IMG/VR virus record: IMGVR_UViG_3300017991_000001
Coordinates: 147,085 to 211,084 of that record
Direction: 5' to 3' (one strand)
DNA length: 64,000 nt
The notes under the pieces are model-generated. The model worked only from the letters and a program-made list of their open reading frames with translations, did not search any database and was not told the origin of the DNA. Made by a program: the position numbers and the translations under genes. Numbering within the stretch: the first letter of the stretch is position 1; the number at the start of each line of letters is the position of its first letter. Positions 13,698-39,706 of this stretch are shown one piece after another.

Positions 13698-13710
13698 AAG
13701 GAGACACACA

Positions 13711-13956
13711 ATGGCCGGTAAGGAAGAGCAAGTCAAAGAGGCGGAAGCCAACATCCAGGAGCGCCTGCAGGCGTTCGACTACGGGATGGAACTCTTCTTC
13801 AAGGAAGCGGGCATCGAGAAAGCCGCGGTTGCGCAGGCCGTCGGTCTCGAAGAGCAGGACCTTGCCCCGAAGTCGGCACGATGGCTGAAGGAACAGATGG
13901 AGGCGGCGAACAAGGAAGCAGAGAGCAAAGACGCCGCCCCGACAAAGGAGGAGTAG
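13711..13956 (+). CDS. small acidic protein with repeated K-x-A
   Basis: AAGGAG RBS then ATG 13711 (MAGKEEQVKEA...FFKEAGIEKAA). Confidence 0.7.
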   Translation: MAGKEEQVKEAEANIQERLQAFDYGMELFFKEAGIEKAAVAQAVGLEEQDLAPKSARWLKEQMEAANKEAESKDAAPTKEE

Positions 13957-14031
13957 GCCCGTTCGGTCGGGTCTCTCCGCTACTGCGCAGGATAGGCCTG
14001 ACCTGGGAGCCCGACCACGAGGAGATCCTCG

Positions 14032-14778: not shown

Positions 14779-14790
14779 GGAGACGCTCAC

Positions 14791-17606: not shown

Positions 17607-18308
17607 ATGGATTACAGGGGATACCTGATCAAGCAGGCGGCAGCGGGGCTTGTTGGCGAACAGGCCCCCGCGCCCGCTTCATGGTTTCTCAACCCCGTGA
17701 ACAAGGGGGATCGGGTACGCAAGTTCCTGAAGAACAGGAAGATCCAAAAGAGTCTCCAGAAGGAGGCGATGGGGCTGCGGCGGGCGCAACGTTTGGCGCG
17801 CCTGATGCGCAGCGGAAAGTTCAGCAAGCGCCGGGAGGTGTTCAAGCAGAAGCACGGGATTGAGACGCGGCATCCCTACGAGACAGCGCTGCATGACGTC
17901 AGGCGCAGGCTGCTGCGCCGGCAGCCGGAGAAGGCTTTTGGGGTGTTGACGGACCCGGACGTGCGGGACACGCTAAAGTATGTGGCGCGCAAGGGGCGCA
18001 ACCCGCTGGAACACCTGGAGCGCATGGGCGCCACGTCGAAGGCGGAACTGTTGGGGTTGGGGTTCCCGCCTGGCGTGCGACCGCCTGTCGGGTTGGGCGT
18101 GTTCGACCCGCTGCACAAGATCAAGGGTCGGTACCGGGGCGGCCAGGCAGCCAGCCGACCCATGGGTGCCTTGCCTGGCAGCCGGGTGATCGGGGCGCGG
18201 GAGAGTGCGCTGCCCGCGATACAGTTCGCCAAGGTCAAGGCCAAGGTGAAGGCGCCCGGCGGCAAATGGAAGAAGCGCAAGATGCGGATCGAGGACATGC
18301 CTGCATAA
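17607..18308 (+). CDS. leader-bearing highly basic protein inserted between sheath and tube
   Basis: AAGGAG RBS; starts MDYRGYLIKQA; very K/R-rich. Confidence 0.75.
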   Translation: MDYRGYLIKQAAAGLVGEQAPAPASWFLNPVNKGDRVRKFLKNRKIQKSLQKEAMGLRRAQRLARLMRSGKFSKRREVFKQKHGIETRHPYETALHDVRRRLLRRQPEKAFGVLTDPDVRDTLKYVARKGRNPLEHLERMGATSKAELLGLGFPPGVRPPVGLGVFDPLHKIKGRYRGGQAASRPMGALPGSRVIGARESALPAIQFAKVKAKVKAPGGKWKKRKMRIEDMPA

Positions 18309-18813: not shown

Positions 18814-21435
18814 GTGTATTCCGTGGCCTTCGATTTCAGGTCTGAAGACACGTTGTCTGCGCGCCTGCGTCGCAGGGACACGGGCACACGCTCGGACCCC
18901 ACTTTCCAAGTTGGACTGATCAAAGACACTTACGCGCATACGGGTTGCTACCTGGTGGGGTTGCCTGCCGGGCGAACCATCGTTGCCACCGAAGCTTTGC
19001 CGATGTTTTCGGGCATACCCATGGGTGCCCGACCCGTGGGTATGTACATGCCGGGTGCTCGTGTAGTCGTCGCGCAATTCCCCCAAGTTGAATACGGTTT
19101 GATACTGGGCACGTCGCTAAAACAGGTCTCCGACGCCCGAGTCGTATTGCCTGACAGCATCGGCCGCCCGCGTCTGGATGTAGGCGTGAAGAGCGACAAC
19201 ATGCATTACGGTCCGTTGCAGGACTACGACACGCCCGGCAACTTTAGCGTTGGCCGTCCCCTCGACACGCTGCCCGGCGACTGGGGAAGCATCAACGACA
19301 TGGGCGTGGGCGTGCTCGTCGGCCGGATGATGGCCCTCCTGCGCGCCTCCGACCTGGCCAAGATCGAGGCCTTCTGGGGCGACGACCTGCTCAGAATCTT
19401 CGGCTACAACATGGAGATCAGCACCGCCGCCACCGAAGAGCAGCGGGTCAACGACGAGGGCGAGTACAACGAGATCCTCTTCAAGACGCCGTATCCGTGG
19501 GAAGGGTTGGGCAGCCGGGGCGGCCCCGGCGGCACCAGCACCACCGACGACGCCCCGGCGAAGAAGGGTTCGGTCAAGGCCACCGTGGAGCCCGAGGAGG
19601 ACGACCAGCACATCCTGCCGCGCTTCACCCGGCTGACGGGCTACCTGGGCGACATGGAGCGGGAGTGGATCTCCGCTCCGCCGTCCGAGCTGGAACTGGA
19701 GACCTTCAAGGGCCTGACGCGGCACACGGGTCTGTACGAGCAGGTCAAGAGCATCGACGGGTCCTACGCCCTGCGCTCGGCCCGCGAGATCATGCTCGAG
19801 AAGACCATCCTCATCCCGGTGCCCAAGCAGATGACCTCGTCCGAGGACCCGACGGGGGACAATAGGGAGAACTACTCCGCGTCGGGCCTGTTCAACGGCA
19901 CCCACGAGAAGAAACCCTACTTCTGGGGCGAGGACAAGGCCGGCATACGCAGCGCGCAGATGCTGGACTACCATACCTGGTTCTTCAACCGCTACACGCC
20001 CGTGGGCCTCAACAAGCACGAGCTGGACTGGTACTACCCAGAAGAGTCCGGCGGCGCCCTTGGCGACGGCACGCTCTACACGGGCGGCTACAACAACGGC
20101 CACGAGTTCCTCATGGAGCTGCCGCAGATCGCGGACATCACCATCGACCACCGCTCCGGGAACATCCAGAAGTACTACCGCTCGCGCAGCGCGTTCCACA
20201 TGCATGACGACGGCTCGCTGACCATCGAGGACGGCTACGGTTCCCAGATCGTCATGGCGGGCGGCTCGATCTCCCTGAAGGCCTTCAACGACGTCTTCCT
20301 GCAGCCGGGCCGAAGCATGGTCTGCTGGGCGCCGTACGACGCGATCGTGCGGGCCGGCAACTGCGCCGACGTCTCCGCGGCGCTGGGGGACGTGCGCCTC
20401 AAGGCCGAGCGCAACCTGCAGATCCTGGGCGGCAACTCCAAGTCCGACGGCGGCGTGCTGATCGAGAGCCGCTCGACGGGTCCGCAGACGGCCTCCGACT
20501 TCGGCGAGAAGACCGGTGCCCGGGTGACCAGCCACGGCATCACGATCAAGAGCGCCGCCTCCCCGGTCTACGTCGTCGGCAGCGAGGTCTACGTGGGCCG
20601 CTACGCCGAGGGCGCCGGCTCCGTCATCATCGACGGCGGGGACCAGGGCCGTGTGCTGACACGCGGCGCGCAGATCCTGACACGCTCCACCGACGTCATC
20701 TCCCAGACGGTCGTGGCTCCGGGCGACGGCCCCGAGGAGGAGATGTTCGCGCTCAACCTGAACGGGGCGCTCCTCTCCACCAACATCGACATCGGCGGCT
20801 CGATCCGCACGTCGCCTTCGGGCACCGGCAAGACCGGGGACGCGGTCATCGGCGGACAGATCCTCTGCCATGGCCTGGGTGTCTTCGGGGACAACGTGCT
20901 GACCAACGGCCAGATGGCCCAGCGCGAGGGCTCCAACTTCGTGGCCAGCATCGAGCGCGACATCGACCTGGGCACCGAGCCCAGCGAGATCGCCGCCAAG
21001 CTCAACCGGCAGGTGGAGGCCGTGCGTGAAGTGATCGACGAGCTGAACGACGAAGCCGTGGAGGAGGCGGAAACGTCCCCCGGCAACAAGGAGTTCCAGG
21101 ACAGCATCGGGGCCTCCATGCGGGCGACGGAGGAGGACCTGAAGCTGGGCGACTCGTTCATCATCTACGAGTCCCGTTGGCAGCAGGTCATGCGCGCCAA
21201 CGGCAACGCCTCGACGTGGAACGAACCCGTCGTGGAGGCGCCCAGCGGGGAGCCCACGCGGCCTCACCCGGGCGAGGCGGCCTGGGAGGAGGGCGATCAT
21301 TACGCCACGGTCGACCCGCTCAACCTGAGCCTGTCCGAGAACAAGACGCTGGAGCGCGAGAACATGCAGAACGAGGGGGCCGAGCCCGAACTGGCCACCC
21401 TCGCCGAGGGGTATCTGATCAACACGCAGACATGA
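18814..21435 (+). CDS. putative baseplate hub/spike protein (gp5/VgrG-like beta-helix)
   Basis: Repeating short beta strands (HMHDDGSLTIEDGYGSQIVMAGGSISL); follows the tube; start codon uncertain. Confidence 0.55.
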   Translation: MYSVAFDFRSEDTLSARLRRRDTGTRSDPTFQVGLIKDTYAHTGCYLVGLPAGRTIVATEALPMFSGIPMGARPVGMYMPGARVVVAQFPQVEYGLILGTSLKQVSDARVVLPDSIGRPRLDVGVKSDNMHYGPLQDYDTPGNFSVGRPLDTLPGDWGSINDMGVGVLVGRMMALLRASDLAKIEAFWGDDLLRIFGYNMEISTAATEEQRVNDEGEYNEILFKTPYPWEGLGSRGGPGGTSTTDDAPAKKGSVKATVEPEEDDQHILPRFTRLTGYLGDMEREWISAPPSELELETFKGLTRHTGLYEQVKSIDGSYALRSAREIMLEKTILIPVPKQMTSSEDPTGDNRENYSASGLFNGTHEKKPYFWGEDKAGIRSAQMLDYHTWFFNRYTPVGLNKHELDWYYPEESGGALGDGTLYTGGYNNGHEFLMELPQIADITIDHRSGNIQKYYRSRSAFHMHDDGSLTIEDGYGSQIVMAGGSISLKAFNDVFLQPGRSMVCWAPYDAIVRAGNCADVSAALGDVRLKAERNLQILGGNSKSDGGVLIESRSTGPQTASDFGEKTGARVTSHGITIKSAASPVYVVGSEVYVGRYAEGAGSVIIDGGDQGRVLTRGAQILTRSTDVISQTVVAPGDGPEEEMFALNLNGALLSTNIDIGGSIRTSPSGTGKTGDAVIGGQILCHGLGVFGDNVLTNGQMAQREGSNFVASIERDIDLGTEPSEIAAKLNRQVEAVREVIDELNDEAVEEAETSPGNKEFQDSIGASMRATEEDLKLGDSFIIYESRWQQVMRANGNASTWNEPVVEAPSGEPTRPHPGEAAWEEGDHYATVDPLNLSLSENKTLERENMQNEGAEPELATLAEGYLINTQT

Positions 21436-25350: not shown

Positions 25351-26986
25351 AAACTTCTACCGCGTCGATGTGCAGGTGCGGGCCGAGATCGGCGGGCAAT
25401 CCGTGCCCGTGAACAGCGTCTCCGTGCGCTACTCGATCGACCGTATACCGGAAGCCGCTATTACCATACCAGTGGGCCGCTCAGCGCGCGGGGACGCCGT
25501 ACACGTGGGTGCGGGTGTTTTCGGCACGCTGCCTCCCTTTACGTCCATGCGTATCTACGCGCTTGCTGAGGCGACGCCCGCCGGTCGCGACGCTCCGCGA
25601 AAAGGAGGATTGCCGCAAGGGGAGTTCCTTCTGTTCGATGGGTACGTGTCCGCGCCGTCCATGCATCTCGATGTTTCAGGCGGCATGGGCAGTGCCACGC
25701 TCCGTGTACAAGGTTTTGGAAGGCTGGGCGGCTTGGCTGGAGCAACCACGCTGGGCGTGGGCGTGACCTTGAACAAGCCTCCGGGCGGTACGGACGTGTT
25801 TATGAGTAGTTTTGGTCAGAACGAGAAGAACAACCACCTGACGATTACTGACCAGCTCATGAAGAAGGGGTATTACAGAGACATCGGTGAAGCCGTTTTG
25901 GAACTGTTTGACGACGCGCTGAACGTGACCAGCGTTTGGGCCCACGATCAGCCGGGTTCGGCCAACGCTGGAGCTGCCGCGGACCGTGCCCACGCGAGTC
26001 TGGTGTCGGGCGCCAGCTTCGACCTGCTCAAGCGCGCGTCTCAGGTCAATCAGCAGGCGTTCGGACGCATGGTGGCGGAAACATTAGCGAATGTTTTCTG
26101 GGGCGTGTGGTCGGGCGTCGACAAAGCTGGAAACTTCTCGCCCAGCGCGGGCGGCGATTTGTGGGAAGTGATGCAGAAGCTCCAAGGCGTTTTCTACTTC
26201 CACGTCGTACCCACGGCGGCCACGGATTACATGGCGCCGATTACCCCCAACCTTGGCGGCGACCCGAACAACCTCTTCCCGGCCGGTGAATATTCCATCA
26301 TAGGCGGGGGTGAGGATTTCTTTGAAGGAGGGGGCGCCCGTTACATGTACGCCTATATCACACAGGTGGGTTTGGCGGCGTCGAGTTTCCAATCCTCTCC
26401 GTGGAATGACGGTTCGTCGGTAACCGGGCGCGTAGGGTACGCGAACTTGTCGTTGGGCGATGAAGACTTCGTGTTGGACGGTGGGCGCATCTTCATGTGC
26501 GGTTCACCGCCGTGGCTCATACCTGCCGGTTCACAAGCCAAGGACACACTGAATCCGTTCAAGGGCATCAGCGACGCGGCAGGTTCCGGCGGTTGGTTTA
26601 GCAGTGGCAAGCGGGCGTCGGAAATCGCCATGTTCGGTTCAACGCTGGGTGACCGTGTCGCCAGAACCATCCTGCATGAGCTGGTCTTTGAGCACCGTAA
26701 GCTTGCCGTTGCCGGCCGCCTGCGCACGGACGTGGCACCCGGCAACATCGTACGAGTTACGCTGCCCGCGGAAGGGTTCATCGGTCAACCCGGTGACAAC
26801 CTGTATGGGATGGCAAGCGATGTTATCCTGAGGATTATGACTCAGGAAGGCGGCAGTTTGGCGCGAACGGAGGTGGGCATTTCGCACCTGCGCACCGAAA
26901 GCGAGCACGAACGCCTCACGTTGGACGAACACCCCGTATACGGGGAGACTTGGTCGGGCGTGCCGTTAGTCGTGGAGGAGAGCTGA
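25334..26986 (+). CDS. putative baseplate hub protein (gp27/gpD-like)
   Basis: VSVRYSIDRIPEAAITI, LLFDGYV and C-terminal GRLRTDVAPGNIVRV patterns typical of hub proteins. Confidence 0.55.
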   Translation: MAIRLENFYRVDVQVRAEIGGQSVPVNSVSVRYSIDRIPEAAITIPVGRSARGDAVHVGAGVFGTLPPFTSMRIYALAEATPAGRDAPRKGGLPQGEFLLFDGYVSAPSMHLDVSGGMGSATLRVQGFGRLGGLAGATTLGVGVTLNKPPGGTDVFMSSFGQNEKNNHLTITDQLMKKGYYRDIGEAVLELFDDALNVTSVWAHDQPGSANAGAAADRAHASLVSGASFDLLKRASQVNQQAFGRMVAETLANVFWGVWSGVDKAGNFSPSAGGDLWEVMQKLQGVFYFHVVPTAATDYMAPITPNLGGDPNNLFPAGEYSIIGGGEDFFEGGGARYMYAYITQVGLAASSFQSSPWNDGSSVTGRVGYANLSLGDEDFVLDGGRIFMCGSPPWLIPAGSQAKDTLNPFKGISDAAGSGGWFSSGKRASEIAMFGSTLGDRVARTILHELVFEHRKLAVAGRLRTDVAPGNIVRVTLPAEGFIGQPGDNLYGMASDVILRIMTQEGGSLARTEVGISHLRTESEHERLTLDEHPVYGETWSGVPLVVEES

Positions 26987-27684
26987 TGGACAAGGAATAT
27001 GAGATCTGGAAGGGCAAGCCCAGCGACGCGAACTTCGACGCGGTGCTGAAGAAGGCCGACCCCGTCATCAACTCGGCGCTGCAGTCTTACGCTGGCGGGG
27101 ACAAAGGGCTGCATTCCAGGGCGAAACTGCTGGCCGCGCGGGCGATCAAGAGCTACGACGCGACCAAGGGGACCAAGCTGCGCACCCACCTGATGACCCA
27201 GCTGCAGCCGCTCTCCCGTACGCACCGCGAGCGCACCCAGGTCGTGCGCGTGCCCGAGCGCGTCACCGCGGACCTCTACAAGATGAGGCAGGAGGAACAG
27301 CGCTTCAAGGATCAGTTCGGCCGCTCGGCCTCCGACAGCGAGCTGTCCTCGGCGACGGGCCTCTCCCGCAAGCGGCTCATGCATGTGCGCAAGTTCGCCC
27401 GGGGAGAGATGGCCGAGTCGGGCCTGGTGGGGGACGAGGGCGAGATCCTGTACCCCGGCGTGTCCAAGCCGGACCCCGAGCAGGTGCTGATCGAGTACGT
27501 CCACCACGACCTGGACCCGATCGACCAGACCATCCTGGAGCATCGCTCCGGCCTGTACGGGAAGCCCGTTTTGAGCAACAATGATATCGCGGCGCGGTTA
27601 AGATTATCGCCGGGCGCCGTATCGCAGCGGGCGGCGAAGATCGCCAAGCGGATCAGCGAGTTGCGTGACCAGGGGGTCGCCTGA
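26986..27684 (+). CDS. sigma-70 family RNA polymerase sigma factor (phage-encoded, group-3-like)
   Basis: Region 2 AIKSYDATKGTKLRTH, VVRVPE, region 3 GRSASDSELSSATGLS, region 4 HTH LSNNDIAARLRLSPGAVSQ; GGAGGAG RBS. Confidence 0.85.
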   Translation: MDKEYEIWKGKPSDANFDAVLKKADPVINSALQSYAGGDKGLHSRAKLLAARAIKSYDATKGTKLRTHLMTQLQPLSRTHRERTQVVRVPERVTADLYKMRQEEQRFKDQFGRSASDSELSSATGLSRKRLMHVRKFARGEMAESGLVGDEGEILYPGVSKPDPEQVLIEYVHHDLDPIDQTILEHRSGLYGKPVLSNNDIAARLRLSPGAVSQRAAKIAKRISELRDQGVA

Positions 27685-28123: not shown

Positions 28124-28594
28124 ATGGCCAGCACGAACTACACGGGACGGACGGTGGACCTGTTCATCTTCCAGGGGGCGCTGCCCGCCGGGGAGCAGCT
28201 GATCGAGACGGGCTTCGGCACTGCGGGCGAGGTCATCACCGGCATCCAGAAACTCGTGCAGTCGTTCACGACACTGTTCCTGACACGCATCGGCACCGTG
28301 AAGTACAACGCCTCGCTGGGCTCGGGTTTCATCGCGGCCATCCAACGCGGGCGCATCCGCGACGAGTCGGGCGCGCGCACGGAGTTCGCGCTGGCCGCCG
28401 AGGACGTGCGCAAGATTCTGGCCGAAGATGCGGAGGCCAACAACCCGCCGGACGACGAGACGTATGCGGGCGCGGACCTGGAGAGTCTTGAATTAAACAG
28501 GGCTGAATCGTTGCTCGTGTTGAAGGTTCGCGTAAACTCCGTAGCGGGCGAGAGTCGTGAAGTTTTCCTCCCCGTGCCCCTGGCGATCAGGTAA
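28124..28594 (+). CDS. baseplate wedge protein (gp25/gpW-like)
   Basis: ITGIQKLVQSFTTLFLTRIGT...LGSGF pattern; 156 aa; precedes a baseplate J-like gene. Confidence 0.7.
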   Translation: MASTNYTGRTVDLFIFQGALPAGEQLIETGFGTAGEVITGIQKLVQSFTTLFLTRIGTVKYNASLGSGFIAAIQRGRIRDESGARTEFALAAEDVRKILAEDAEANNPPDDETYAGADLESLELNRAESLLVLKVRVNSVAGESREVFLPVPLAIR

Positions 28595-28997: not shown

Positions 28998-30647
28998 ATG
29001 TCCAGCGACTTGACAATCAACGACCTCGATTCGGACGACGTCCAACAGGCGGAAGGCTTCCTGGTGGACTTCCTGGCCACGGAGTACCCGAGCCTGGACC
29101 TGACGGCCGGCAAGGTTCTGCGTGATCTTCTGATCCGCCCGAACGCGATCTTCCACTCGCTCAACCAGGAGGACATCGACCGGCTGCGCAGGTCCATGAG
29201 CCTAAAAGCCATCGAGGAGGACCCCACCCTGGCCGACGACGACATCGTCGACGGGGTGCTCTCCAACTACCGCGTGGAGCGCGGCGAGGGCACCAAGGCC
29301 GAGGGGCAGGTCACCATCATCGTCGCCACGTTCACGACGACCACCGTCAGCGTGGGCACGGTCTTCACGGCCAACGGCGTCAACTTCGTCACCACCCAGA
29401 CCTACAGCGGCGTGACGACGGCCGACGCCGTGGTCTCGGACCAGCAGAAGGAGATCCAGCCCAGGAGCGACGGCACGTACGGTTTCACGATCCCCGTGGA
29501 GGCCGAGGAGGTGGGCGCCGTGGAGGTGCGGCGCAGCACGCGCTTCGCCGTGGTGCCCGAACCGGCGGGCCTGGTGGACGCCGTCGCGGCGGAGGACTTC
29601 TCGGGCGGCTCGGACACCGAGACCAACTCGGAGCTGATCGAGCGGTTCAAACTGGGGATCTCCCCGTCCACGTTCGCCGGCCGCGTGCACATCCAGTCGC
29701 TGCTGCGGGAGGAGGTCCCGAACCTGCAGGCCAGTTCCATCACCGGCTTCGGCGACCCCGAGATGCTGCGGGACCGCCACAACATCTTCGCCGTGTCGCA
29801 GGGCGGCAAGGCCGACATCTGGGCCCGGACGGGCACGCTGCCCACCACCCGCACGCTGACCAAGACGGCCACCCTGATCGACGCGGACAGCAAGACGTGG
29901 CAGGTTTCGATCCTGCGGGACGACGCGCCGGGCTTCTACACCGTGCCGTTCATCCTCCCGGAAGGGGCCGGCACGGACGAGAACACCTTTGAGATCACCG
30001 CGGAGACGCGGGGGATGGACCTGACCGCCGAGACGGGGGCGTTCGTGCCGGACGTGGACGACCTCGTCGAGGGCGGCTACTCGCGGTACCAGACGGCGGT
30101 GCTGCAGTTCGTCGACCCGGACACGGACACCTCGGGCCTGACCGAGCACGAGTCCACCCAGACGGTCCAGGTGGGCGTGCTGGCGTTGCCCGACATCGAC
30201 ACGCTGCAGGCCCTGTCCAACGACCGGGACCGCCGCAACCCGCAGGCCGACTACCTGGTCAAGGCGCCGGTGCCGGCCTTCGTGGCGATCACGCTGACGG
30301 TCCAGTACAAGACCGACACCGAGGCGCCGGACGCCGACGCGATCAAGGAGTCGATCGCCGGCCGGGTCAACGACCTGGGCTTCGAGGTGGGCAAGCTGCC
30401 CTCCAGCATGGTCTACGACGCCGTACACAATGCCACTTCCGAGCTGGACGCGCTGGTGGTCGCGCCCATCGACATGTTCTGCCAGATCCGCAGGCCCGAC
30501 GGGACCGTCGTCTCCATCCGCGACGGGAACGAGATCAGGATTCCCGACGAGCCGGAGCTGGGCGTGACCTCCCGCACGACGATGTTCTACGTGGACGTGA
30601 GCGACATTGACGTGACCGTCGAACCGCTGCCGGTGCTGCCGGCGTGA
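28998..30647 (+). CDS. baseplate J/gp6-like wedge protein
   Basis: GKVLRDLLIRP, RGEGTKAEGQVTI, FSGGSDTETNSELIER and GGKADIW motifs. Confidence 0.8.
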   Translation: MSSDLTINDLDSDDVQQAEGFLVDFLATEYPSLDLTAGKVLRDLLIRPNAIFHSLNQEDIDRLRRSMSLKAIEEDPTLADDDIVDGVLSNYRVERGEGTKAEGQVTIIVATFTTTTVSVGTVFTANGVNFVTTQTYSGVTTADAVVSDQQKEIQPRSDGTYGFTIPVEAEEVGAVEVRRSTRFAVVPEPAGLVDAVAAEDFSGGSDTETNSELIERFKLGISPSTFAGRVHIQSLLREEVPNLQASSITGFGDPEMLRDRHNIFAVSQGGKADIWARTGTLPTTRTLTKTATLIDADSKTWQVSILRDDAPGFYTVPFILPEGAGTDENTFEITAETRGMDLTAETGAFVPDVDDLVEGGYSRYQTAVLQFVDPDTDTSGLTEHESTQTVQVGVLALPDIDTLQALSNDRDRRNPQADYLVKAPVPAFVAITLTVQYKTDTEAPDADAIKESIAGRVNDLGFEVGKLPSSMVYDAVHNATSELDALVVAPIDMFCQIRRPDGTVVSIRDGNEIRIPDEPELGVTSRTTMFYVDVSDIDVTVEPLPVLPA

Positions 30648-30654
30648 GGATGCC

Positions 30655-31464
30655 ATGAACGCGAAAGCTTATCTCATCAAGCAGGCCGTCGAACCCATCG
30701 AGCTCCTCATGGGCGGCGGCACGTTGGGAGGTGGCTACCTGGCCGGCGAGTTGGCCGACGCGGGCGCGAACACGATGCTGAGCGACGTGGTGGCCCGTCA
30801 GATCGAGCGGTCCGCCGGCAAGATGTCGCCCAAGGAGCGGCGTGCCATACAAAAGGGCATTGGCGGGGTGAAGAAGGTACCCGTGCATGTCGTGGGCCCG
30901 AAAAAGCTTCACCACGGCAGCGAATACTTCGCGGCCGTGCCCGGCAAAAAGGGTATCGGCGAGGTGGTGATAACGAAACGCACGCCCGACTTCGTGTTGG
31001 CCCACGAGTTGGGGCACGCGAAGGTAAAGCCTACGTTCTTCAGCAAACGGATGTCGCGGTTGGAAGGATTATCCGAACGCCACGGCAAGATGTTGGGCGG
31101 CGGGGCCGGCGCGCTGTGGGCGGCACTCAGTGCCGACCCGGAAGAGAGCGCGCTGCGCACGGGCGTGGAAAGCGGCCTCAAGGGCGCGCTGACCGGCGTG
31201 GCGTCGCACGCGCCCATCCTCGCACACGAGGGGGCCGCATCGTTCCATGGCCTGCGCGGCATGGCTCGCGCGGGTGTGCCGTGGCGCAGCATGGCCCGTT
31301 CGGTACCCGGACTGGCCGCCCTGTTCGGCACGTACCTGGCTTCGGCCGCCCTACCTTCGGCGGGTGTCGCGGCCGGCGCGGGCCTGATCGCGCGCGAGGT
31401 CAAGAAGCGGCAGCTCAAGAGGGAGCTGCGCAAGGCTCGGCGGGAGGGCAAGCTTGGACGCTAA
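30655..31464 (+). CDS. leader-bearing HExxH zinc metallopeptidase-like membrane protein
   Basis: MNAKAYLIKQA; VLAHELGHA; downstream HEGAAS; Gly-rich hydrophobic helices. Confidence 0.7.
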   Translation: MNAKAYLIKQAVEPIELLMGGGTLGGGYLAGELADAGANTMLSDVVARQIERSAGKMSPKERRAIQKGIGGVKKVPVHVVGPKKLHHGSEYFAAVPGKKGIGEVVITKRTPDFVLAHELGHAKVKPTFFSKRMSRLEGLSERHGKMLGGGAGALWAALSADPEESALRTGVESGLKGALTGVASHAPILAHEGAASFHGLRGMARAGVPWRSMARSVPGLAALFGTYLASAALPSAGVAAGAGLIAREVKKRQLKRELRKARREGKLGR

Positions 31465-32086
31465 AGCCTACCTGATCAAGCAGGCCACGACGGTCGGTCG
31501 CCTGGCACGCATCGCCAAGCGGCATGGCATACCACTGGTCGGCGACTGGCGCTACGCGGCCAAGCTGCTGGGTCGGCAGGCCACGCCCAAGGGCAAGGCG
31601 CATTACCGGCGCGCGGCCGGCCTGATCGAGCCGGGCGAACGAAAGATCCTGCGCCGCCTACAGGCGAAGACCAAGGACCCCTTGGCAGAGCTCGGCGTGC
31701 AGCGCCTGCCGGGGGAGCGCCGGCTCGGGGTCATGGGAGATCGTACCGGCTTGGAGGTGACTGAGGGTGCCGTGCGTACGGTTCATACACACCCGGAAGC
31801 AGTGGAAAAGGTATTGGGGGTGGACCTTCCGCCTTTCAGGAGGAACCGGCTGGGGCAGGTGTTCCCCTCGAGCGGGCTGGACTACCGTTACAAGAAGTTC
31901 ATGCCCAAGACGATTAGGGAAGCCATAGCGGACCTAAAGAAGGGACCCTACTTCTTCAAGCACGACCTGGGTGATCTGGAAGATAACTTAGGACTGACCC
32001 ACGCCATCCTGGACCCGAGCACGGGCGTGCAGTCGGTGATAAAAGGTGGTCGGGGTAAGCTGAGAAGGCTGTTCTTCAAGGAGTGA
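31454..32086 (+). CDS. leader-bearing basic protein with a JAB/MPN-like motif
   Basis: TTG start with GGAGG; MDAKAYLIKQA; VHTHP...FPSSGLD...HAIL. Confidence 0.6.
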   Translation: MDAKAYLIKQATTVGRLARIAKRHGIPLVGDWRYAAKLLGRQATPKGKAHYRRAAGLIEPGERKILRRLQAKTKDPLAELGVQRLPGERRLGVMGDRTGLEVTEGAVRTVHTHPEAVEKVLGVDLPPFRRNRLGQVFPSSGLDYRYKKFMPKTIREAIADLKKGPYFFKHDLGDLEDNLGLTHAILDPSTGVQSVIKGGRGKLRRLFFKE

Positions 32087-32088
32087 TG

Positions 32089-32853
32089 ATGAACCCGCGC
32101 GCGTACCTCTTGAAGAGGGCCAAGGACCTGGACGCGGATCTGTCCACGGCGGGCCAGCTCATGACCGGAAACGTGCTGGGTGGCATAGGGGGAGGCTTGG
32201 CTGCCGCCGGTTCAACAGGTCTCCTGGCAAAGGTGCTCATGCCGGGGCTGGGCAGCCTGGCCGGGCCCGTTTCTTCATCGGAGCGCAAGCAGCTTCAAAA
32301 GGCCATGGGCGTCAAGAAGGTGCCCGTGAAGACGCTCAACCCTTTCAAGATGCCCGTGGAAGGGGAGCACTTCGACCCACAAGCAGGCAAGCGTGGAAAG
32401 GTGGTGATCTCCAAACGTTCGCCGGATTACATCCTGGCGCACGAGCTGGGCCACGCGCAGGACCCCGCCTGGACCAGCCCGAGGATGATGAGGGTTTACG
32501 ACATCGCAAGGGATGTAGGAATTCCATTGGGCAGTCTGGCCGGTTCCATCTGGGCCGCGCACGGCGCGGACCCGGAGGATAGCGTAGCCCGCACGGCAGT
32601 CGAGAGCGCGTTGAAAGGTGCCGCAGGTGGAACGGTCGGGTTCTCGCCCGTACTCGCCAGAGAGACGGTGGCATCCTTGCGGGGTTTCCAGGGGATGTAC
32701 AACGCGGGCATGCCTTGGCATAGGATACTCCGGTCAGCGCCCGGTTTGGCAGTGGGCATCCTCACATACATAGCCACGGGGGCGCTACCCGCTGCCGGCG
32801 CGGCAGTGGGTACGGGCCTTGCCGCCAGAGAGCTGAAGAAAGAGGAAGACTAG
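32089..32853 (+). CDS. leader-bearing HExxH metallopeptidase-like protein (paralogue of 30655)
   Basis: MNPRAYLLKRA; GVKKVPV, ILAHELGHA, ADPEDS..RTAVES.LKGA and G.PW..I.RS.PGLA shared with the 30655 protein. Confidence 0.75.
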   Translation: MNPRAYLLKRAKDLDADLSTAGQLMTGNVLGGIGGGLAAAGSTGLLAKVLMPGLGSLAGPVSSSERKQLQKAMGVKKVPVKTLNPFKMPVEGEHFDPQAGKRGKVVISKRSPDYILAHELGHAQDPAWTSPRMMRVYDIARDVGIPLGSLAGSIWAAHGADPEDSVARTAVESALKGAAGGTVGFSPVLARETVASLRGFQGMYNAGMPWHRILRSAPGLAVGILTYIATGALPAAGAAVGTGLAARELKKEED

Positions 32854-34478
32854 TGTCTGAGCTGCCGGGATACCCGGAGAACGACCTCAACAACGGACGT
32901 GACCTGCTGGTCATGCTGGGCAGCTTCTGGTCCGAGCTGTTCGGTGACCGGGACATCCTGCAAACCCACCTGCAATCCTCCGCCCACGAGCAGGCCCAGA
33001 CGCACCTGAACTATCTCGAGGCCGTGGCCAACGTTTCCCGCTTCACCATCCCGGTCTTCCACCGCGAGGACTGGCACCTGCTGACCTTCAAGCAGAGCGA
33101 GGCCAACGCGACGGCGAGCACGTACCGGGAAGGCGACCTGGTCTACGGGGAGCAGCCCGGCACGGTGGCGGGACGCGACGCCGGCTTCGTGCAGACCTAC
33201 GGCGGCACGGACCGCCCGGACCAGACGCGGGTGGTGCTGCCCGAGACCCTGGTCGACGCGCCCGTGACCCTCCAGAACCTGGTCATCGACCCCAGCCGCG
33301 TGTTGCTCAAGGACCTGGACTACGACATCGAGGAGCGCTACGGGAGCCGCGTGATGCGCTTCCGCGCCGACCCCTTCACGGACGACCTGATCCCGCGGCG
33401 CGACGTGGTGGATGACGACGGCAACGTGGTGGACGTGGAGATCGCCCTGTGGATCTACGTCGGCGAGTTCGACCTGGAGTACGTCTACACCCAGTTCGGG
33501 TACGCCATCGGTCTGCAGCTGCCGTCCACCGAGTTCTACAAGCAGCTCCTCAACGCCATCTGGGACTCGCACGTGCTGGGCTTCTCAAGGGCCGGTATGG
33601 AGAGCTTCCTGTCCGCCGTGTCGGGCGCGCCGATCATACTGGGCGCGCGGGAGACGGTGGAGGTGATCCGCGACGAGGGTGACTCGACCCTGGTCGTGAC
33701 CGATGCCAACGTTTATCGCGTGCCGGCTGGTGGCAACGTACTGTTGTCGGTGGGAACCACCTACCTGGCCGGTACGACGGTATCGGACATCTTCCAGATC
33801 AGGGAGCTGTCGGGTCACAGCCCGAGCTACGACCTGCTACCGGCCATGGCGTTCAGCAAGAGCCTGCTCAGCGGGCAGTTCATCTCCGAGCTGTTCATGG
33901 AGGACAAGCTCGCCGAGCTGTCGTACGAGGGGCTCGACGAGGACGGCAAGGCCATCGTGACCTTCGAGGTGTCCGGCTTCCCCAGCGACGTGGAAGCGTT
34001 CTGGGATGCGGTGCACGAGCGCGGCAAGGCGGATGGGCAGACGCTGGCCAACCTGCTAGACACGCGGGAGAATCCGGTGGGCGAGCCCGGCGAGAGTGAC
34101 CTGCCGTCCACGGTGAACCCGCTGGAGTTCATGCTGGATAACCTGTTGAAGAACAACCTCTTCCTGCTGCGCGTGAAGCCCGGGGCGTTCGATCCCGACG
34201 CTCCCGGCTTGAGCCTGTTCAGCCGGCTGCGCGAGATCATGCCGCCGCACACGACGTATATCGTGTTCATTGAGGTGACACCTGACGCGGAGAGCGTTGA
34301 CTTATCTCAGGCTGGCGGAGAAGATGAACCTGGTGCGGAGGTTAGCGCCGGTATGTTCCACGGGTCAGGGCTGCTGCTGGACGAGCTGTACGAGGGTACA
34401 TCGGCTCCCGCAGGCGACGTGTTGACATACGATGAGGCGGTCGTGGCCGCGCGCCACGTTTCGTTCACCTGTCAATGA
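32853..34478 (+). CDS. putative baseplate wedge protein (gp7/gpI-like)
   Basis: MLGSFWSELF N-terminus, LREIMPPHTTYI C-terminal motif; follows baseplate J once the inserts are discounted. Confidence 0.6.
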   Translation: MSELPGYPENDLNNGRDLLVMLGSFWSELFGDRDILQTHLQSSAHEQAQTHLNYLEAVANVSRFTIPVFHREDWHLLTFKQSEANATASTYREGDLVYGEQPGTVAGRDAGFVQTYGGTDRPDQTRVVLPETLVDAPVTLQNLVIDPSRVLLKDLDYDIEERYGSRVMRFRADPFTDDLIPRRDVVDDDGNVVDVEIALWIYVGEFDLEYVYTQFGYAIGLQLPSTEFYKQLLNAIWDSHVLGFSRAGMESFLSAVSGAPIILGARETVEVIRDEGDSTLVVTDANVYRVPAGGNVLLSVGTTYLAGTTVSDIFQIRELSGHSPSYDLLPAMAFSKSLLSGQFISELFMEDKLAELSYEGLDEDGKAIVTFEVSGFPSDVEAFWDAVHERGKADGQTLANLLDTRENPVGEPGESDLPSTVNPLEFMLDNLLKNNLFLLRVKPGAFDPDAPGLSLFSRLREIMPPHTTYIVFIEVTPDAESVDLSQAGGEDEPGAEVSAGMFHGSGLLLDELYEGTSAPAGDVLTYDEAVVAARHVSFTCQ

Positions 34479-34485
34479 GGTGGCC

Positions 34486-34854
34486 ATGAATCATCGGGCT
34501 TTCCTGCTTAAAGAGGCTGTGCAGAAGCGGTCCTACAGTCTGCTTCTGGGCCCTGTCGGCGGTGGTGCCGTGGGGGGCACCATGGCCGCACGGAACATCG
34601 ATCCCGAGCACAAGGAACGCATCAAGAAGATCCTGTACGGCGTGATGTACGGCACCGGCGGCGGCCTGATAGGAGGGGTGGGCGGACAGCTGGCCGGCGG
34701 CGCGGTGGGCGGTTTCGGTGGCAAGCACATCGGCAGGTTGGGGGGTATGGGGAGAGTCGGCGGAGCGGCCGGCATGACCCTCGGGGCGCTGCTGGGGGCC
34801 TTCGGAGGCATGGCTGCGGGCGGGCGCCTGGGCGGCATTAAAGCATCGGAATAG
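34486..34854 (+). CDS. leader-bearing glycine-zipper protein
   Basis: GAGG RBS; MNHRAFLLKEA; repeated GxxxG hydrophobic helices. Confidence 0.75.
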   Translation: MNHRAFLLKEAVQKRSYSLLLGPVGGGAVGGTMAARNIDPEHKERIKKILYGVMYGTGGGLIGGVGGQLAGGAVGGFGGKHIGRLGGMGRVGGAAGMTLGALLGAFGGMAAGGRLGGIKASE

Positions 34855-35465: not shown

Positions 35466-37346
35466 GTGGCGCCCATGGCATCCCCCGTCACACCCTGGAT
35501 AAGCCGGGTCAATCCCATCCGCGATGGGGAAGAGGTACGCCAGCAGGTCGCGAACCGGTACCCGCACGAGCTGAAGGATCGCACCCAGCACCTCAAGGAC
35601 CTGCTGGACGCGATGAGTGCCGGACAGGCGCTGTTCCTGCGCGACGTGGCGCTCGACAGCGCCGTCGAGGTGGGGCACTACGTCTACTGGGACGCCTCCG
35701 CGCTGGAGTACAAGCGGGCCGTGGCGGCCCTGGTCTACGACGCTTCGGTGGGCGGTCTGGTCGTGGCGGACTCCAGCTACGCGGTCGGCATCGTGGTCTA
35801 CAAGGCCGGCGCCACGCGCGGCGACATCCTGCAGACGGGCTTCCTCAACGGCGACTTCGACTTCACCAACACGATCGGCTCGGCGGGCGACACGGCGGCG
35901 GAGGCGGGCGCCTACTACCTGTCCGGGACCACGCCGGGCATGGCGGTCAAACAGAAGCCGCCCGTCGGCATCTACCTCATGTTCCTGCGCGGCGACGGCG
36001 GCGCGCACGTGGCCCCGGCCCCCAGAGAGGTGCTGGAGGATCACATCCACTACGTGATGGATCTACACGCCCAACCGGCCGGCACGCTGGAATGCACCGA
36101 ACCACACAACGAATACGAATTCCTTACCGTTGACGACACGATGCCAGGCTGGCTGCCGGCCGACCATTCATCGTTCAACGGCGCGGCCCCCTCGGGTGCC
36201 GTGCTGGGCTACAACCTGGCCATGCACACGGAGCTGGAGCGCGTGTGGCCCCCGTTCCCCATGGACAGCGTCTTCGTGGAGCGCGACGGCGTGGGCGAGC
36301 ACCCCAACCGCTACATCGTCGACGCCACGACGCTGTGGTGGACGGAGAAGTGCTACGGCAAGGCCCCGTGGTCGCCGGAGATCCTGGACTGCGGTTCGCC
36401 CGCCTCGTCATCGTCATCGTCTTCCTCGAGCAGCAGCAGCAGCGAGGCCGGACCCGTGGCGCGCGAGTGTGAGAGCGGCGGCGTGCTTGAGCAGATGGGC
36501 TTCGTCAAGGGCGACCCCTTCGAGCGGCGCTTGCGCCTGTACTTCACCAAGATGCTGGCGAAGACCTCCAACACGGTGGTGACCAGCCTGAGGGCGGCCG
36601 AGGGCAGCCCGATCACCGTGCAGGGCTGTGACGGGGAGGAAGCCGGCACCGGGGACCTGGAAGTCGACATCGACCTGGCGCTGGGCCTGACCGAAGGGGA
36701 GGGCGGCTACCAGGCGATCAAGGACATCGACGGGCTGACGTTCAAGCGCGGCCCCGTCATCGAGGCGATCAAGGCCGGCACCAACGTTGAAATCAACGCG
36801 GTGTCGGGCGAGAGCGCCATGGACACGAACGGGTACGTGTACGGCAAGGCCGTGATCAACGCCGTACTGCCCGGTTCCGACCAGCAGGAAGGCAGCATCG
36901 TGCTGGTCTCGCTGGACAAGGCGCGCGAGGACGTGGTCGATGACATCTTCGTGCTGTCGCTGCCGGCCGGGATCAACTCCTCCTTCCGCGGCAAGATCGA
37001 CGTGCCCCGCGACGGGATCGTGGCCAACCCGCAGATGGAGCTGTGGTTCTGGCTGCTGGCCAACTCGGCCGGCGAGCTGCCCGAGCTGCCGCTTTCGTAC
37101 CGCCGCCTGCCCCGCCCGGACGGGTGTACGTCCCTGGCGTGGCCGGAGGCCGACACGGCGCTGGCGAACCTGAACCCGGGCTGCGGCACCCTGACCGCCA
37201 AGCGCTACGTGGAGGTGACCGGCGCGGCCTTCTCCATCGCCGAGGGCGACCAGGTGAACTTCGAGTTGGGACGGCTCTCTACGGACACGTACGCGGGCAA
37301 GGTGAGCATCGCCCGCATGGGCTTTCGGATAACAGCAGGCAGCTAG
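35466..37346 (+). CDS. baseplate/tail structural protein with poly-Ser
   Basis: Position; PIRDGEEV...NR N-terminus; 13-Ser tract. Confidence 0.6.
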   Translation: MAPMASPVTPWISRVNPIRDGEEVRQQVANRYPHELKDRTQHLKDLLDAMSAGQALFLRDVALDSAVEVGHYVYWDASALEYKRAVAALVYDASVGGLVVADSSYAVGIVVYKAGATRGDILQTGFLNGDFDFTNTIGSAGDTAAEAGAYYLSGTTPGMAVKQKPPVGIYLMFLRGDGGAHVAPAPREVLEDHIHYVMDLHAQPAGTLECTEPHNEYEFLTVDDTMPGWLPADHSSFNGAAPSGAVLGYNLAMHTELERVWPPFPMDSVFVERDGVGEHPNRYIVDATTLWWTEKCYGKAPWSPEILDCGSPASSSSSSSSSSSSSEAGPVARECESGGVLEQMGFVKGDPFERRLRLYFTKMLAKTSNTVVTSLRAAEGSPITVQGCDGEEAGTGDLEVDIDLALGLTEGEGGYQAIKDIDGLTFKRGPVIEAIKAGTNVEINAVSGESAMDTNGYVYGKAVINAVLPGSDQQEGSIVLVSLDKAREDVVDDIFVLSLPAGINSSFRGKIDVPRDGIVANPQMELWFWLLANSAGELPELPLSYRRLPRPDGCTSLAWPEADTALANLNPGCGTLTAKRYVEVTGAAFSIAEGDQVNFELGRLSTDTYAGKVSIARMGFRITAGS

Positions 37347-37355
37347 GGATGAGAC

Positions 37356-38285
37356 ATGCCTCCAGTAGGCCCGGTTTGGAACGCGGACTGGCTGAACGCG
37401 AACAGCCAGCGGCACTACCCGATCTCGGAGAGTGCCACCCTTAAGGACTTGACGGGCAGCTTCGAGTTGCCCAAGGACTTCCTTGTCGACCTGCTTCTGC
37501 CCGTACATTCCGATGCCGGCATCGATCCGACCCTCTTTCACGTGCACAGCGTCGGCATCTTCGGTACCGGCATCTCGCTGACGCTGGGCTACAACGGCAC
37601 GGCAATCGGCAGCATCTCTACAGATTCATCGACGTTCACCGGCAACCAGAGCTTCATCTTCGAGGGGACGGGCGCCTTCTTCGACACGGTCGGGAAGGTG
37701 ATCCTGGGTTCCCTGGACAACATCCTGAACTTTGCCGGCTCCTATGAGTTCGACGTCGCGGGGGCCCGTCTCGAACCACATGCCATCGTCCCGGACCTTC
37801 GCGGCGTATCTGCTCTGTACCTCAAGAACGGGGACGACACGATTGGTCCCCTGACCGGCGACATCGTCTTCCAGGCCGGCCGCAACTTCCTCATGAACTA
37901 CGTGAACGGCCCGGCGGGAGAGCCGGACCGGCTCCTGATGAACGCCATCTCGGGTGAGGGGCTGACCGAGGACTGTGACTGCGGGGAGGCCGCGTCGCGC
38001 CCCTGCATCGAGACCATCAACGGGATCAGCCCGGACGAGGACGGCGACTACACGCTTCTGGGTGACGAGTGTCTGGAGCTGGAAGCCATCGCCAACGGGC
38101 TCCAGCTAACGGACAAGTGTGCCAATCCCTGCTGCGGATGTCCTGAACTGGAGGTGGTGGAGACCCACATGCAGTCCCTGACGGAAGCCATCTACCGGCT
38201 CGAGCAGCAGGCGTCGAAGCTGGAAACGGCGATCATCACCATGGAGAACGTGATCCTTGCCTCCAAAACGGAACTTCAGGAATGA
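37356..38285 (+). CDS. tail/baseplate paralogue 1 (WLNAN..R.YP family)
   Basis: DWLNANSQRHYP; TINGISPDEDGD; CANPCCGC; C-terminal coiled coil. Confidence 0.7.
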   Translation: MPPVGPVWNADWLNANSQRHYPISESATLKDLTGSFELPKDFLVDLLLPVHSDAGIDPTLFHVHSVGIFGTGISLTLGYNGTAIGSISTDSSTFTGNQSFIFEGTGAFFDTVGKVILGSLDNILNFAGSYEFDVAGARLEPHAIVPDLRGVSALYLKNGDDTIGPLTGDIVFQAGRNFLMNYVNGPAGEPDRLLMNAISGEGLTEDCDCGEAASRPCIETINGISPDEDGDYTLLGDECLELEAIANGLQLTDKCANPCCGCPELEVVETHMQSLTEAIYRLEQQASKLETAIITMENVILASKTELQE

Positions 38286-39706
38286 CGCAGCCCGTCTTCG
38301 AGTTCTACAGTGCCAACGAGTTCCGCGAGTACCCCTTCGACACGCGGCGTGATGACGGTCTGCACGAGCTTTTCGTGGACGCTTACGTGATGCATACGGC
38401 GCACCGGGATAACGCCGGACGCCTGCGCATGGTGAGTTTCAATACGACCGGGGACCTGGAGCTGCGCTTCGAGGACGGCACGTTGCTGGGCACTCTCACA
38501 AGTGCAGACGGGTTTATTTCCAGCTCTTTTGGCCGCTATACCTTGTACGAATGGCGAAAATCAGTTACGTATGGGGCCGGGTTCACGTCAGAGGATCTTA
38601 TCGCCCGCCTAGTGACAGTCACCGAGAAGTTGAGCAGCTTCTCTTTTCCAATCTCACCGTCAGACGCCTACCTCCTCGCCTCCAGGGTGAACCCACGTCC
38701 GTTGAACGTGATCTCCACGGCTTTGGCGTTCCCAGGTTTGGCTTGTTGTCTGGGCGGCCCCAATCGCAATGCTTTGCAGATGGAATCAGGCTATAACCTT
38801 GAGCTTTCCACGCAAGCACCAGAAAGCGAAGTCGGCCTGGCCCTGGCCGAGACGCCGGAAGTGAGGGCACCGGAAGAAGTGTCCGTGTCGGCGTTGGCTG
38901 GCGCGGGCGCGGGCACCTTCCCCTTGTGCGAGGACCCCTCCGAGTTCGTGCGCTCGCTCAACGGTGTCCAGCCCAACGACGAGAAGGACTTCCGCCTCGG
39001 ACTGGTGGACTGCACCTGGGAGGAGACGCGGCTGGTGGGCGGCACCTCCTCGCCGGTCAATCCCAACACCGATTACCTGGGCTCGATCATCGATGCCACG
39101 GAGAAGATCATCCTGCAGCTGCACCAGGCCTGTCGGGCCTGCTGCGACTGCCCGGACTACGGCCGCGCCTACGACATCATCTATACGACCTGGTCGCGCG
39201 CGAAGACCGTGAACAACCGTCTCATCGAGGTGCTTGGAGACTACGAGCGCATCCTGAACGAGTACAAGGAGATCAAGGCGGACCGCGAGACCGACCTGCA
39301 GGTGAAACTGCGCCTCATCGCGACGCCCGACTACCAGGTGGCCATCGCCGTGCAGATCGGGAACAACTCCCACACGGACCTGAACCCGATGACGCTGACG
39401 GTCGACGCGAACAACGTTGCGTCGCCGACCATCTATCCCGTGTACACCGAGGGTAGCGGCTTCGTGGAGATGGAAGGTACCCACAACGCACAGAGAGACC
39501 CAGCCGGAACGCCGGGCGGTCCCTTCACGCTCGAGATGCCGGCGCTGGCGCCCGGCAAGTACGCCATCTTTCGGATGGCGGTGCGGTACACCGGCAACCT
39601 GCGCTACCAGAAGTACTCGGAGGTTTCGGCAAGGGTGGTGAACGACGAGTTTGACGAGCTGGCGGAGCGGCGCATCCTGCTTCGTGGGCCCCTGGTGAAA
39701 GAATAA
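38282..39706 (+). CDS. tail/baseplate paralogue 2
   Basis: EFYSANEFREYP; SLNGVQPNDEKD; CRACCDC; coiled coil then Ig-like C-terminus. Confidence 0.7.
   Translation: MTQPVFEFYSANEFREYPFDTRRDDGLHELFVDAYVMHTAHRDNAGRLRMVSFNTTGDLELRFEDGTLLGTLTSADGFISSSFGRYTLYEWRKSVTYGAGFTSEDLIARLVTVTEKLSSFSFPISPSDAYLLASRVNPRPLNVISTALAFPGLACCLGGPNRNALQMESGYNLELSTQAPESEVGLALAETPEVRAPEEVSVSALAGAGAGTFPLCEDPSEFVRSLNGVQPNDEKDFRLGLVDCTWEETRLVGGTSSPVNPNTDYLGSIIDATEKIILQLHQACRACCDCPDYGRAYDIIYTTWSRAKTVNNRLIEVLGDYERILNEYKEIKADRETDLQVKLRLIATPDYQVAIAVQIGNNSHTDLNPMTLTVDANNVASPTIYPVYTEGSGFVEMEGTHNAQRDPAGTPGGPFTLEMPALAPGKYAIFRMAVRYTGNLRYQKYSEVSARVVNDEFDELAERRILLRGPLVKE

Follow-up and report, generated by a model that had tools for sequence, protein, structure and literature searches.

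The 64,000-nucleotide stretch of DNA analysed here (the window) makes up the final 64 kb of virus record IMGVR_UViG_3300017991_000001, a 211,084-bp genome of 62.7% G+C with direct terminal repeats that is estimated to be complete. At positions 31454-32086 it encodes a protein of 210 residues, here called the JAB-like protein, which is probably an active, divergent JAMM-like metallohydrolase. The explanation that we favour, tentatively, is that this JAMM-type enzyme carries a clade-specific address tag by which it is sent, with other late accessory proteins, to a common destination, most likely the virion. The gene and the elements on which this explanation rests are as follows.

31454-32086, plus strand: the JAB-like open reading frame (ORF; P0001), 210 amino acids plus stop, with homologues in other phage contigs
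31442-31448, plus strand: Shine-Dalgarno-like GGGAGGG, 5 nt before the TTG start, as read from the sequence
31454-31486, plus strand: N-terminal leader or tag, residues 1-11 (M-D-A-K-A-Y-L-I-K-Q-A), common to seven ORFs of the genome and to proteins of other phages
31487-31669, plus strand: N-terminal helical domain, residues 12-72, drawn from alignments, with predicted helices 14-23, 32-40, 45-55 and 60-72
31670-32083, plus strand: predicted JAB/MPN-like alpha/beta core, residues 73-210; VIA-align matches extend over model residues 55-210, approximately
31688-31690, plus strand: E79, candidate general base, conserved in 16 of 16 sequences; it follows helix 60-72 and directly precedes strand 80-84, as in JAMM proteins
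31784-31795, plus strand: H111-T-H113-P114, candidate metal ligands at the end of strand 108-112, as in JAMM proteins
31865-31882, plus strand: P138-S139-S140-G-L-D143, candidate JAMM Ser/Asp element, displaced by 25 residues from the HxH motif
31964-31966, plus strand: D171, an invariant Asp that precedes short helix 174-177 and strand 181-186 and could instead be the third ligand or a catalytic residue

The TTG codon is taken as the true start because homologues conserve the sequence from residue 1 onwards. The upstream gene, stop included, reaches 11 nt into the JAB-like ORF, whose own stop in turn overlaps the GTG of the next ORF. Short ORFs in other frames or on the opposite strand at the locus are the usual by-products of high G+C. 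The motif strings from which an initial annotation had proposed a leader-tagged JAB/MPN-like protein are all present in the translation, namely LPGE at residue 85, VRTVHTHPE at 107, FPSSGLD at 137, DLGDL at 171 and LTHAIL at 181.

Judged by its sequence relationships, the JAB-like protein is a member of a tiny, phage-only family. A word-based search yielded four relatives, and an exhaustive HMMER search of 1.84 billion representative proteins with a family profile returned 23 proteins. One of these, the 1038-residue repeat protein P0023, was discarded, its match being limited to a W-E-Y-A-A-R-G-G-like repeat. Those relatives for which a contig size is recorded lie on large, phage-like contigs of 140-211 kb. 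All conservation counts given here refer to a 19-member family alignment with a mean column identity of 28%. The best-conserved block of the family is N-terminal (I-P-L-x-G-D-W-R-Y-A-A-K-L-L, residues 26-39). Within the core, H111, H113 and D171 are each present in 19 of 19 members and P188 is likewise invariant; S139 (18/18) and P114 (18/19) follow closely, and V195 and K197 are nearly invariant. E79, in the context A-E-L-G-V directly before strand 80-84, is kept by every sequence that covers it. The initial annotation had assigned the motif Glu to LPGE (E88), and this assignment falls, as E88 is kept in only one of 16 sequences and the conserved Glu is E79. D143 is found in 14 of 17 members and absent from three.

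Four of the JAMM elements (Glu, His, His and Ser) are therefore conserved and in the expected order; the fifth, an Asp, is ambiguous between D143 and D171. In canonical JAMM proteins, S-x-x-D stands 7-10 residues after HxH. The wide spacing and imperfect Asp register pointed out in the initial annotation are both real: S139 lies 25 residues past H113, and the Ser is followed by S139-x3-D143, giving +4 instead of +3. Other family members carry up to approximately 60 further residues after the Ser/Asp element. Because a family of such divergence keeps E79, H111, H113, S139 and D171 without exception, it is reasonably likely that a catalytic site is being maintained. A deaminase, which had been suggested as an alternative, is excluded since the protein is devoid of cysteine; there is no H/C-x-E...PCxxC zinc motif.

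The same conservation bears on the possibility that the protein is a catalytically dead MPN scaffold, or that its resemblance to the fold is due to chance. MPN-minus proteins (Rpn8/CSN6-type MPN domains) characteristically lose active-site residues. A pseudoenzyme or chance resemblance would account for the non-canonical motif spacing, structural Z scores of only 5-6 and the want of any hidden Markov model (HMM) match, but the five invariant residues at such low overall identity are typical of a maintained active site, and we regard this explanation as improbable.

The JAB/MPN-like fold was examined through structure prediction and fold comparison, which bear out the initial assignment: residues 55-210 match mainly JAB/MPN proteins and their deaminase-fold cousins. 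AlphaFold2 run on the 19-sequence alignment gave a model with a predicted local distance difference test (pLDDT) score of 83.7 and a predicted template modelling score (pTM) of 0.83; an earlier model from a five-sequence alignment (pLDDT 51) was discarded. In the model, four helices span residues 14-72, followed by strands 80-84, 91-94 and 108-112. Residues 114-153 are irregular with short helices, and a helix at 154-162 and a short helix at 174-177 precede the three last strands, which lie within 181-209. Residues 1-10 have pLDDT values below 50, so that in the model the tag is unstructured or detached and not packed on the protein body.

The model was compared with 48,161 PDB representatives in an unbiased VIA-align scan, independent of Foldseek, for which the tool sets a safe level of Z 8. 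The top match is PfJAMM1 (5ld9; Z 6.0, rmsd 3.6, 103 aligned residues), followed by the bacterial ubiquitin-like protein (Ubl) deubiquitinase 8tyy_B (Z 5.5), Sst2/AMSH (5.3) and RadC (2qlc; 5.2). Further down are Cap3 (9ild; Z 5.1, 21% identity), Rpn11 (4.8) and AF2198 (4.6). Interleaved with these top rows are deaminases of the same superfold, for cytidine, blasticidin and DNA. A second look gave 30 chains with Z of at least 5, and the rows listed are almost all of MPN or deaminase fold; over the two, Z reaches 6.0-6.3 with some 100 aligned residues. A language-model feature search and structure searches of the Atlas and BFVD likewise led to Prok-JAB, DUF4329/Tox-JAB-2, Toxin-JAB1 and phage proteins named 'JAB domain-containing'. 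Since the independent searches agree and the conserved residues fall on the expected elements, a JAB/MPN-like fold is accepted with good confidence for the modelled protein in spite of middling scores. No such assignment is offered for the N-terminal domain, for which no fold or family match was found; an Atlas search with the N-terminal 76 residues gave no usable lead.

These fold neighbours raise the question of which kind of JAB protein this is. One possibility is a toxin-type JAB (Tox-JAB-2/DUF4329-like or RadC-like) that acts on nucleic acids or nucleotides to manipulate the host, and which would be compatible with the targeting proposed here. Tox-JAB-2 proteins are described as bearing E, H[ST]H, S and D on a deaminase fold and as occurring in Caudovirales, and a nuclease activity has been proposed for them since they have no tunnel for a Ubl tail (PMC3482391); the same nuclease argument has been made for RadC (PMC5512222), which is among the VIA-align matches. 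Among the closest Atlas neighbours, clusters of Toxin-JAB1 and of DUF4329 appear repeatedly, the latter with template modelling (TM) scores of 0.41-0.44. On the other side, PF14220 does not match the protein, peptidase-type JAMMs score equally or higher in the fold search, and no signal peptide or toxin-delivery domain is present. There is also no obvious adjacent immunity gene, although immunity families were not searched. A toxin-type enzyme thus appears distinctly unlikely.

The Tox-JAB-2/DUF4329-like protein to which the literature refers was also located in Xanthomonas phage OP1 (ORF24, 20486-20857, minus strand), where its PF14220 match (E 2.8e-5) is below the cut-off. Its N-terminus is hydrophobic. 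The ORF is situated within the tail-fibre region, on the opposite strand, and is conserved in 21 records of Xanthomonas and Stenotrophomonas phages.

The initial annotation had instead suggested a phage deconjugase, which would strip the Ubl or CD-NTase conjugates made by Bil or by type II CBASS, anti-phage systems that signal through cyclic oligonucleotides. Cap3 and the bacterial Ubl-deubiquitinase are indeed among the fold neighbours, and Bil modifies the central tail fibre of phages (PMC13434031), the JAB-like gene itself being placed among baseplate and fibre genes. However, Cap3 is no closer than archaeal or eukaryotic JAMMs, the Cap3 and BilC models of PADLOC show no sequence similarity to the protein, and genome scans of the phage detected neither an E1 (ThiF) nor a lambda gpI-like Ubl partner (PF06805). 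No publication describing a phage JAB counter-defence protein was found in a literature search. We consider a deconjugase with this role very improbable.

The second line of evidence for the favoured explanation is the leader, which is real, as had been claimed, and is shared with other proteins: seven late ORFs of the phage, otherwise unrelated, begin with M-x(3-6)-[YF]-L-[IL]-K-x-A. When the 211-kb genome is translated in all six frames, the core [YF]L[IL]KxA turns up eight times, where shuffles give an expectation of 0.45, and seven of the eight occurrences are within the first 13 residues of plus-strand ORFs. No conservation is seen in the upstream DNA, and the tag is written with different synonymous codons, from which it follows that the tag is conserved as protein and not as DNA. 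Apart from the JAB-like protein, the tagged proteins of the genome are:

7357-7737, plus strand: 126-residue protein containing a run of poly-Gly and a single hydrophobic segment, no Pfam match
17607-18308, plus strand: 233-residue basic protein beginning M-D-Y-R-G-Y-L-I-K-Q-A, no Pfam match
30655-31464, plus strand: 269-residue protein with the zincin motif A-H-E-L-G-H-A and Gly-rich hydrophobic segments, its stop overlapping the start of the JAB-like ORF
32089-32853, plus strand: second HELGH zincin of similar length and architecture, 254 residues from the ATG at 32089, with weak Pfam zincin hints only
34486-34854, plus strand: 122-residue Gly-zipper protein, no family match, whose counterpart in contig L001 (2835-3137) is also tagged
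139176-139388 of the genome (7.9 kb upstream of the window), plus strand: 70-residue protein, no family match

The tag is found in at least three other uncultured contigs, with two tagged proteins in contig L001. A 192-kb IMG/VR phage record (G001) has four to five tagged proteins, namely four others plus its homologue of the JAB-like protein, and a reversed-pattern control gave zero matches. The four others (L020-L023), which open with M-[NK]-H-L-x-Y-L-I-K-x-A, are mostly Gly-rich and membrane-like, and are encoded as follows:

19636 of G001, minus strand: tagged protein L020
44326 of G001, minus strand: tagged protein L021
48538 of G001, minus strand: tagged protein L022
60623 of G001, minus strand: tagged protein L023

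As a second large phage also has a set of tagged proteins, the tag is regarded as a clade-level feature.

The two zincins that flank the JAB-like gene look like representatives of a widespread, unannotated phage metallopeptidase family. The 269-residue protein finds only phage clusters in the Atlas (feature score 0.95) and has TM scores of 0.53/0.60 to the membrane peptidase Zn_peptidase_2 (PF04298). The homologues P0027 and P0028 are also tagged, and P0028 matches PF04298; the Zn_peptidase_2 model gave nothing usable when run against the genome of the phage.

The nature of the tagged proteins allows a different interpretation, in which they form a membrane-directed late set. The tag would then be a short amphipathic peptide that targets a membrane or a partner, and the JAB-like enzyme would be recruited to the host inner membrane, with proposed late roles in lysis timing, superinfection exclusion or envelope remodelling. 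Gly-zipper or hydrophobic segments in four of the seven tagged proteins, the resemblance of the zincins to a membrane peptidase and the recurrence of Gly-rich, membrane-like proteins in the tagged set of G001 all speak for it. Set against this, the JAB-like, 233-residue basic and 70-residue proteins have no hydrophobic segment, 11 residues, among them a single Lys and three hydrophobic ones, make a short tag for binding a membrane unaided, and there is no lysis-gene context. Membrane targeting is an unlikely explanation.

The JAB-like ORF is placed in a late structural module because of three landmarks nearby, and the local genes around it are all on the plus strand. The landmarks are:

26950-27684, plus strand: sigma-factor-like gene (PHROG_351, E 1.6e-11), inside the structural module and just upstream of the baseplate genes
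28124-28594, plus strand: weak match to a 'baseplate wedge subunit' PHROG (E 0.011)
28998-30647, plus strand: Baseplate_J protein (Pfam 6.9e-12; PHROG_6 6.8e-20)

Genome scans for a terminase, an HK97 capsid and a tail sheath returned no usable match, and so did not locate the head module.

The position of the JAB-like gene within this module is not fixed. The window shares with contig L001 a collinear set of eight structural genes (36-56% identity), to which the JAB-like gene does not belong. In L001, the JAB gene has on its two sides the orthologues of 37356-38285 and 38282-39706, two genes that abut in the window; its place in the window is 6 kb upstream of that slot, between the two zincins. 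In G001, the JAB gene is on the opposite strand among small genes, beside a phosphoesterase region. As its slot differs among the three, the JAB-like gene behaves as an accessory, relocatable cassette and not as a fixed assembly gene.

This mobility speaks against the view that the protein is a morphogenetic JAB peptidase of the tail or baseplate, as proposed for lambda gpK. Such an enzyme would act during assembly on a component of the tail tip or baseplate, either processing it or serving as its chaperone, and the tag would be a peptide by which assembly factors or chaperones recognise the protein. The gene does lie in the baseplate module directly after Baseplate_J, translationally coupled to its neighbours, and the lambda-type tail assembly protein K has a JAB domain with E, HSHP and PSxxD; the Tox-JAB-2-like ORF of phage OP1 also sits in a tail-fibre region. 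Against this view, the slot is not kept in an otherwise collinear tail module, the G001 copy has no recognisable structural context, the protein has neither a fusion to NlpC/P60 nor a gpI-like partner, and approximately 23 relatives are far below what would be expected of a core assembly factor. A role in tail assembly hence seems unlikely. We return to the favoured explanation, that of a tagged accessory hydrolase.

Several results count against that explanation and temper the weight it can be given. The first group concerns the enzyme. The sequence models of Pfam, PHROGs, NCBIfam, PADLOC and the PDB do not recognise the JAB-like protein, and scans of the protein and its aligned relatives with Pfam, PHROG, NCBIfam and PADLOC produced nothing relevant. 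PF01398, PF14464, PF04002, PF14220 and PF15659 do not match any of the 19 family members at E <=1, and six-frame scans of the genome with PF14464 (Prok-JAB) and PF14220 (DUF4329) missed the ORF. Profile comparison with hhalign used a set of six gpK-type (lambda-K-type) JAB domains, in an alignment built from annotated phages; under default settings, it recovered 16 columns around the HTHP strand at a non-significant probability of 1.8%. A greedy alignment placed alpha1, P..E.G, HTHP and PS..D in colinear order with a 15-residue gap, again non-significantly (probability 4.6%); in it, E79 is one column off the Glu of P-x-E-x-C-G in lambda-K-type JAB domains, and P-S...D, longer by one residue, lies over the P-S-x-x-D of gpK. 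Comparison with the OP1 ORF24 (Tox-JAB-2) family gave a probability of 6-12%, and only the HTHP segment scored. Z scores of 5-6 stay below the safe level of VIA-align, and Foldseek returned no match with E <1e-3 in the PDB or BFVD, though JAB entries are frequent among its weak rows. Finally, the canonical S-x-x-D spacing is missing and the third ligand ambiguous.

The second group concerns the tag. The residue after its Lys varies (Q, E, R, T or S) and no match to the T4-type prohead protease (PF03420) was found in the genome, which leaves processing of the tag unsupported. Furthermore, three of the tagged proteins look like membrane proteins, which would also fit a membrane destination in place of the virion.

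Two minor matches arose in the course of these searches. A single-sequence phmmer match to the ferritin-like protein MJ0754 (3q4o; E 0.004) was judged to be due to chance, as it was lost when the family profile was used. Separately, the 873-residue ORF at 18814-21435 has a very weak Prok-JAB match at 18879-18944 (E 0.038, 22 profile positions) that is probably noise.

The mechanism that we infer covers metal binding, hydrolase activity, substrate and the function of the tag. The protein would have three parts, an 11-residue tag, a family-specific helical domain (12-72) and a JAB-like alpha/beta core (73-210). The ligands of a divalent metal (Zn2+) would be H111 and H113, where a beta-strand ends, and an Asp, either D143 or the invariant D171. 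E79 would activate the water molecule and S139 would support the transition state, the HxH motif being parted from the Ser/Asp element by an insertion of some 15-25 residues. The substrate may be a peptide or isopeptide bond in a protein of the host or the phage. The tag would serve as an address peptide that gives the JAB-like enzyme and six other late proteins the same destination, most likely the virion and from there delivery into the next host, as with the capsid-targeting sequence of T4. The suggestion in the initial annotation that the protein is carried as cargo is plausible only by this analogy and by that with the payload signals of Photorhabdus virulence cassettes (PVCs).

The phage itself has few points of reference. 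No cultured relatives were found at DNA or protein level among 50,697 phage records, and Pfam and PHROG matches are nearly absent among its large ORFs, including 20 further proteins of the window. DNA near-identical to that of the record is present in sediment and seawater metagenomes from seven studies; the same search found no RNA runs with this DNA. The JAB-like gene is identical in four metagenome assemblies, and so offers no variants for a ratio of non-synonymous to synonymous substitutions (dN/dS).

Further observations were made elsewhere in the window. The 541-residue gene at 32853-34478 contains a patch (33524-33786) in which a contig of one metagenome assembly shows 48 differences and two indels in 263 nt, whereas the 4.3-kb stretch is otherwise unchanged. 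A conserved tail-module protein here varies locally between strains, and the patch is possibly a determinant of host range. A protein of 626 residues (35466-37346) has a run of approximately 13 serines; its orthologue in L001 and two other tail-module proteins of that contig have similar poly-Ser linkers. Long ORFs overlap on opposite strands at 13516-17259 (minus; 1247 residues) and 14791-17598 (plus; 935 residues), as is typical of high G+C.

Should it prove active as a JAMM-type hydrolase, the protein would represent a phage-only branch of JAB proteins that is invisible to sequence models and has an interrupted metal-site motif. It could then be an effector that acts on host proteins or on ubiquitin-like defence chemistry, for which no published phage counter-enzyme was found. 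If it is inactive or merely structural, it would be no more than an ordinary phage orphan. The tag may be of greater consequence than the JAB motif: in each of several uncultured large phages, five to seven late proteins that are otherwise unrelated carry it. It would be a second, independent example of the 'address label' principle of T4, and would provide a sequence handle for accessory or ejected proteins in metagenomic phages, possibly also for the loading of foreign proteins. At its most speculative, the tag of this large-phage clade would bring a variable set of enzymes and membrane proteins into the virion, of which the split-motif JAMM member would, after injection, free phage or host proteins of the conjugates made by Bil or type II CBASS, making it the first phage-delivered deconjugase; we rate this combination as most improbable.

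Compared with known systems, the JAB-like protein is closest in predicted structure to the JAMM/MPN+ isopeptidases (PfJAMM1, AMSH/Sst2, Rpn11, Cap3 and the Bil-type Ubl-deubiquitinase). It shares with them the predicted fold over residues 55-210 (Z 4.8-6.1) and the order and secondary-structure placement of the Glu, the H-[ST]-H-P motif and the Ser/Asp element. It differs from them in having no similarity at HMM or profile level, in a distance of 25 residues from HxH to Ser in place of 7-10 and in a Ser-Asp register of +4 in place of +3. It also adds the invariant D171, the N-terminal helical domain and the leader, and no Ubl, E1 or E2 partner was detected in its genome.

The likeness to the toxin-type JABs is of a similar kind. 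E79, H-T-H, S139 and D143 or D171 correspond to the published signature of Tox-JAB-2/DUF4329 (PF14220), and clusters of Tox-JAB-1 (PF15659) and DUF4329 are among the nearest Atlas neighbours. In contrast to these proteins, the JAB-like protein is twice as long, owing to its helical N-domain and insertions, and shows no signal peptide and no RHS or other delivery domain; Tox-JAB-2 forms from phages have been described in the literature as secreted. Lambda protein K (JAB plus NlpC/P60) is likewise a JAB-type domain encoded within a tail or baseplate cluster, but the protein described here has no NlpC/P60 domain, no gpI-like neighbour and no conserved slot, and its profile likeness to K is confined to the HxHP strand.

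For the tag, the nearest parallels are first the internal proteins of T4, described as diverse anti-restriction proteins that share only a capsid-targeting sequence (PMC3012670), and next the PVC payloads, which are loaded through N-terminal signal peptides (PMC11495950). In T4 and in PVCs and other extracellular contractile injection systems, as in this phage, a short N-terminal peptide is the sole feature shared by unrelated accessory proteins. The tag is unrelated in sequence to that of T4, is not accompanied by a gp21-type protease and has no fixed [LI]-x-E site; as a further difference, several of the tagged proteins look like membrane proteins. The JAB fold and the principle of the tag are thus known already, and what is new is the combination of a JAB variant invisible to sequence models with a multi-protein tag in uncultured large phages.

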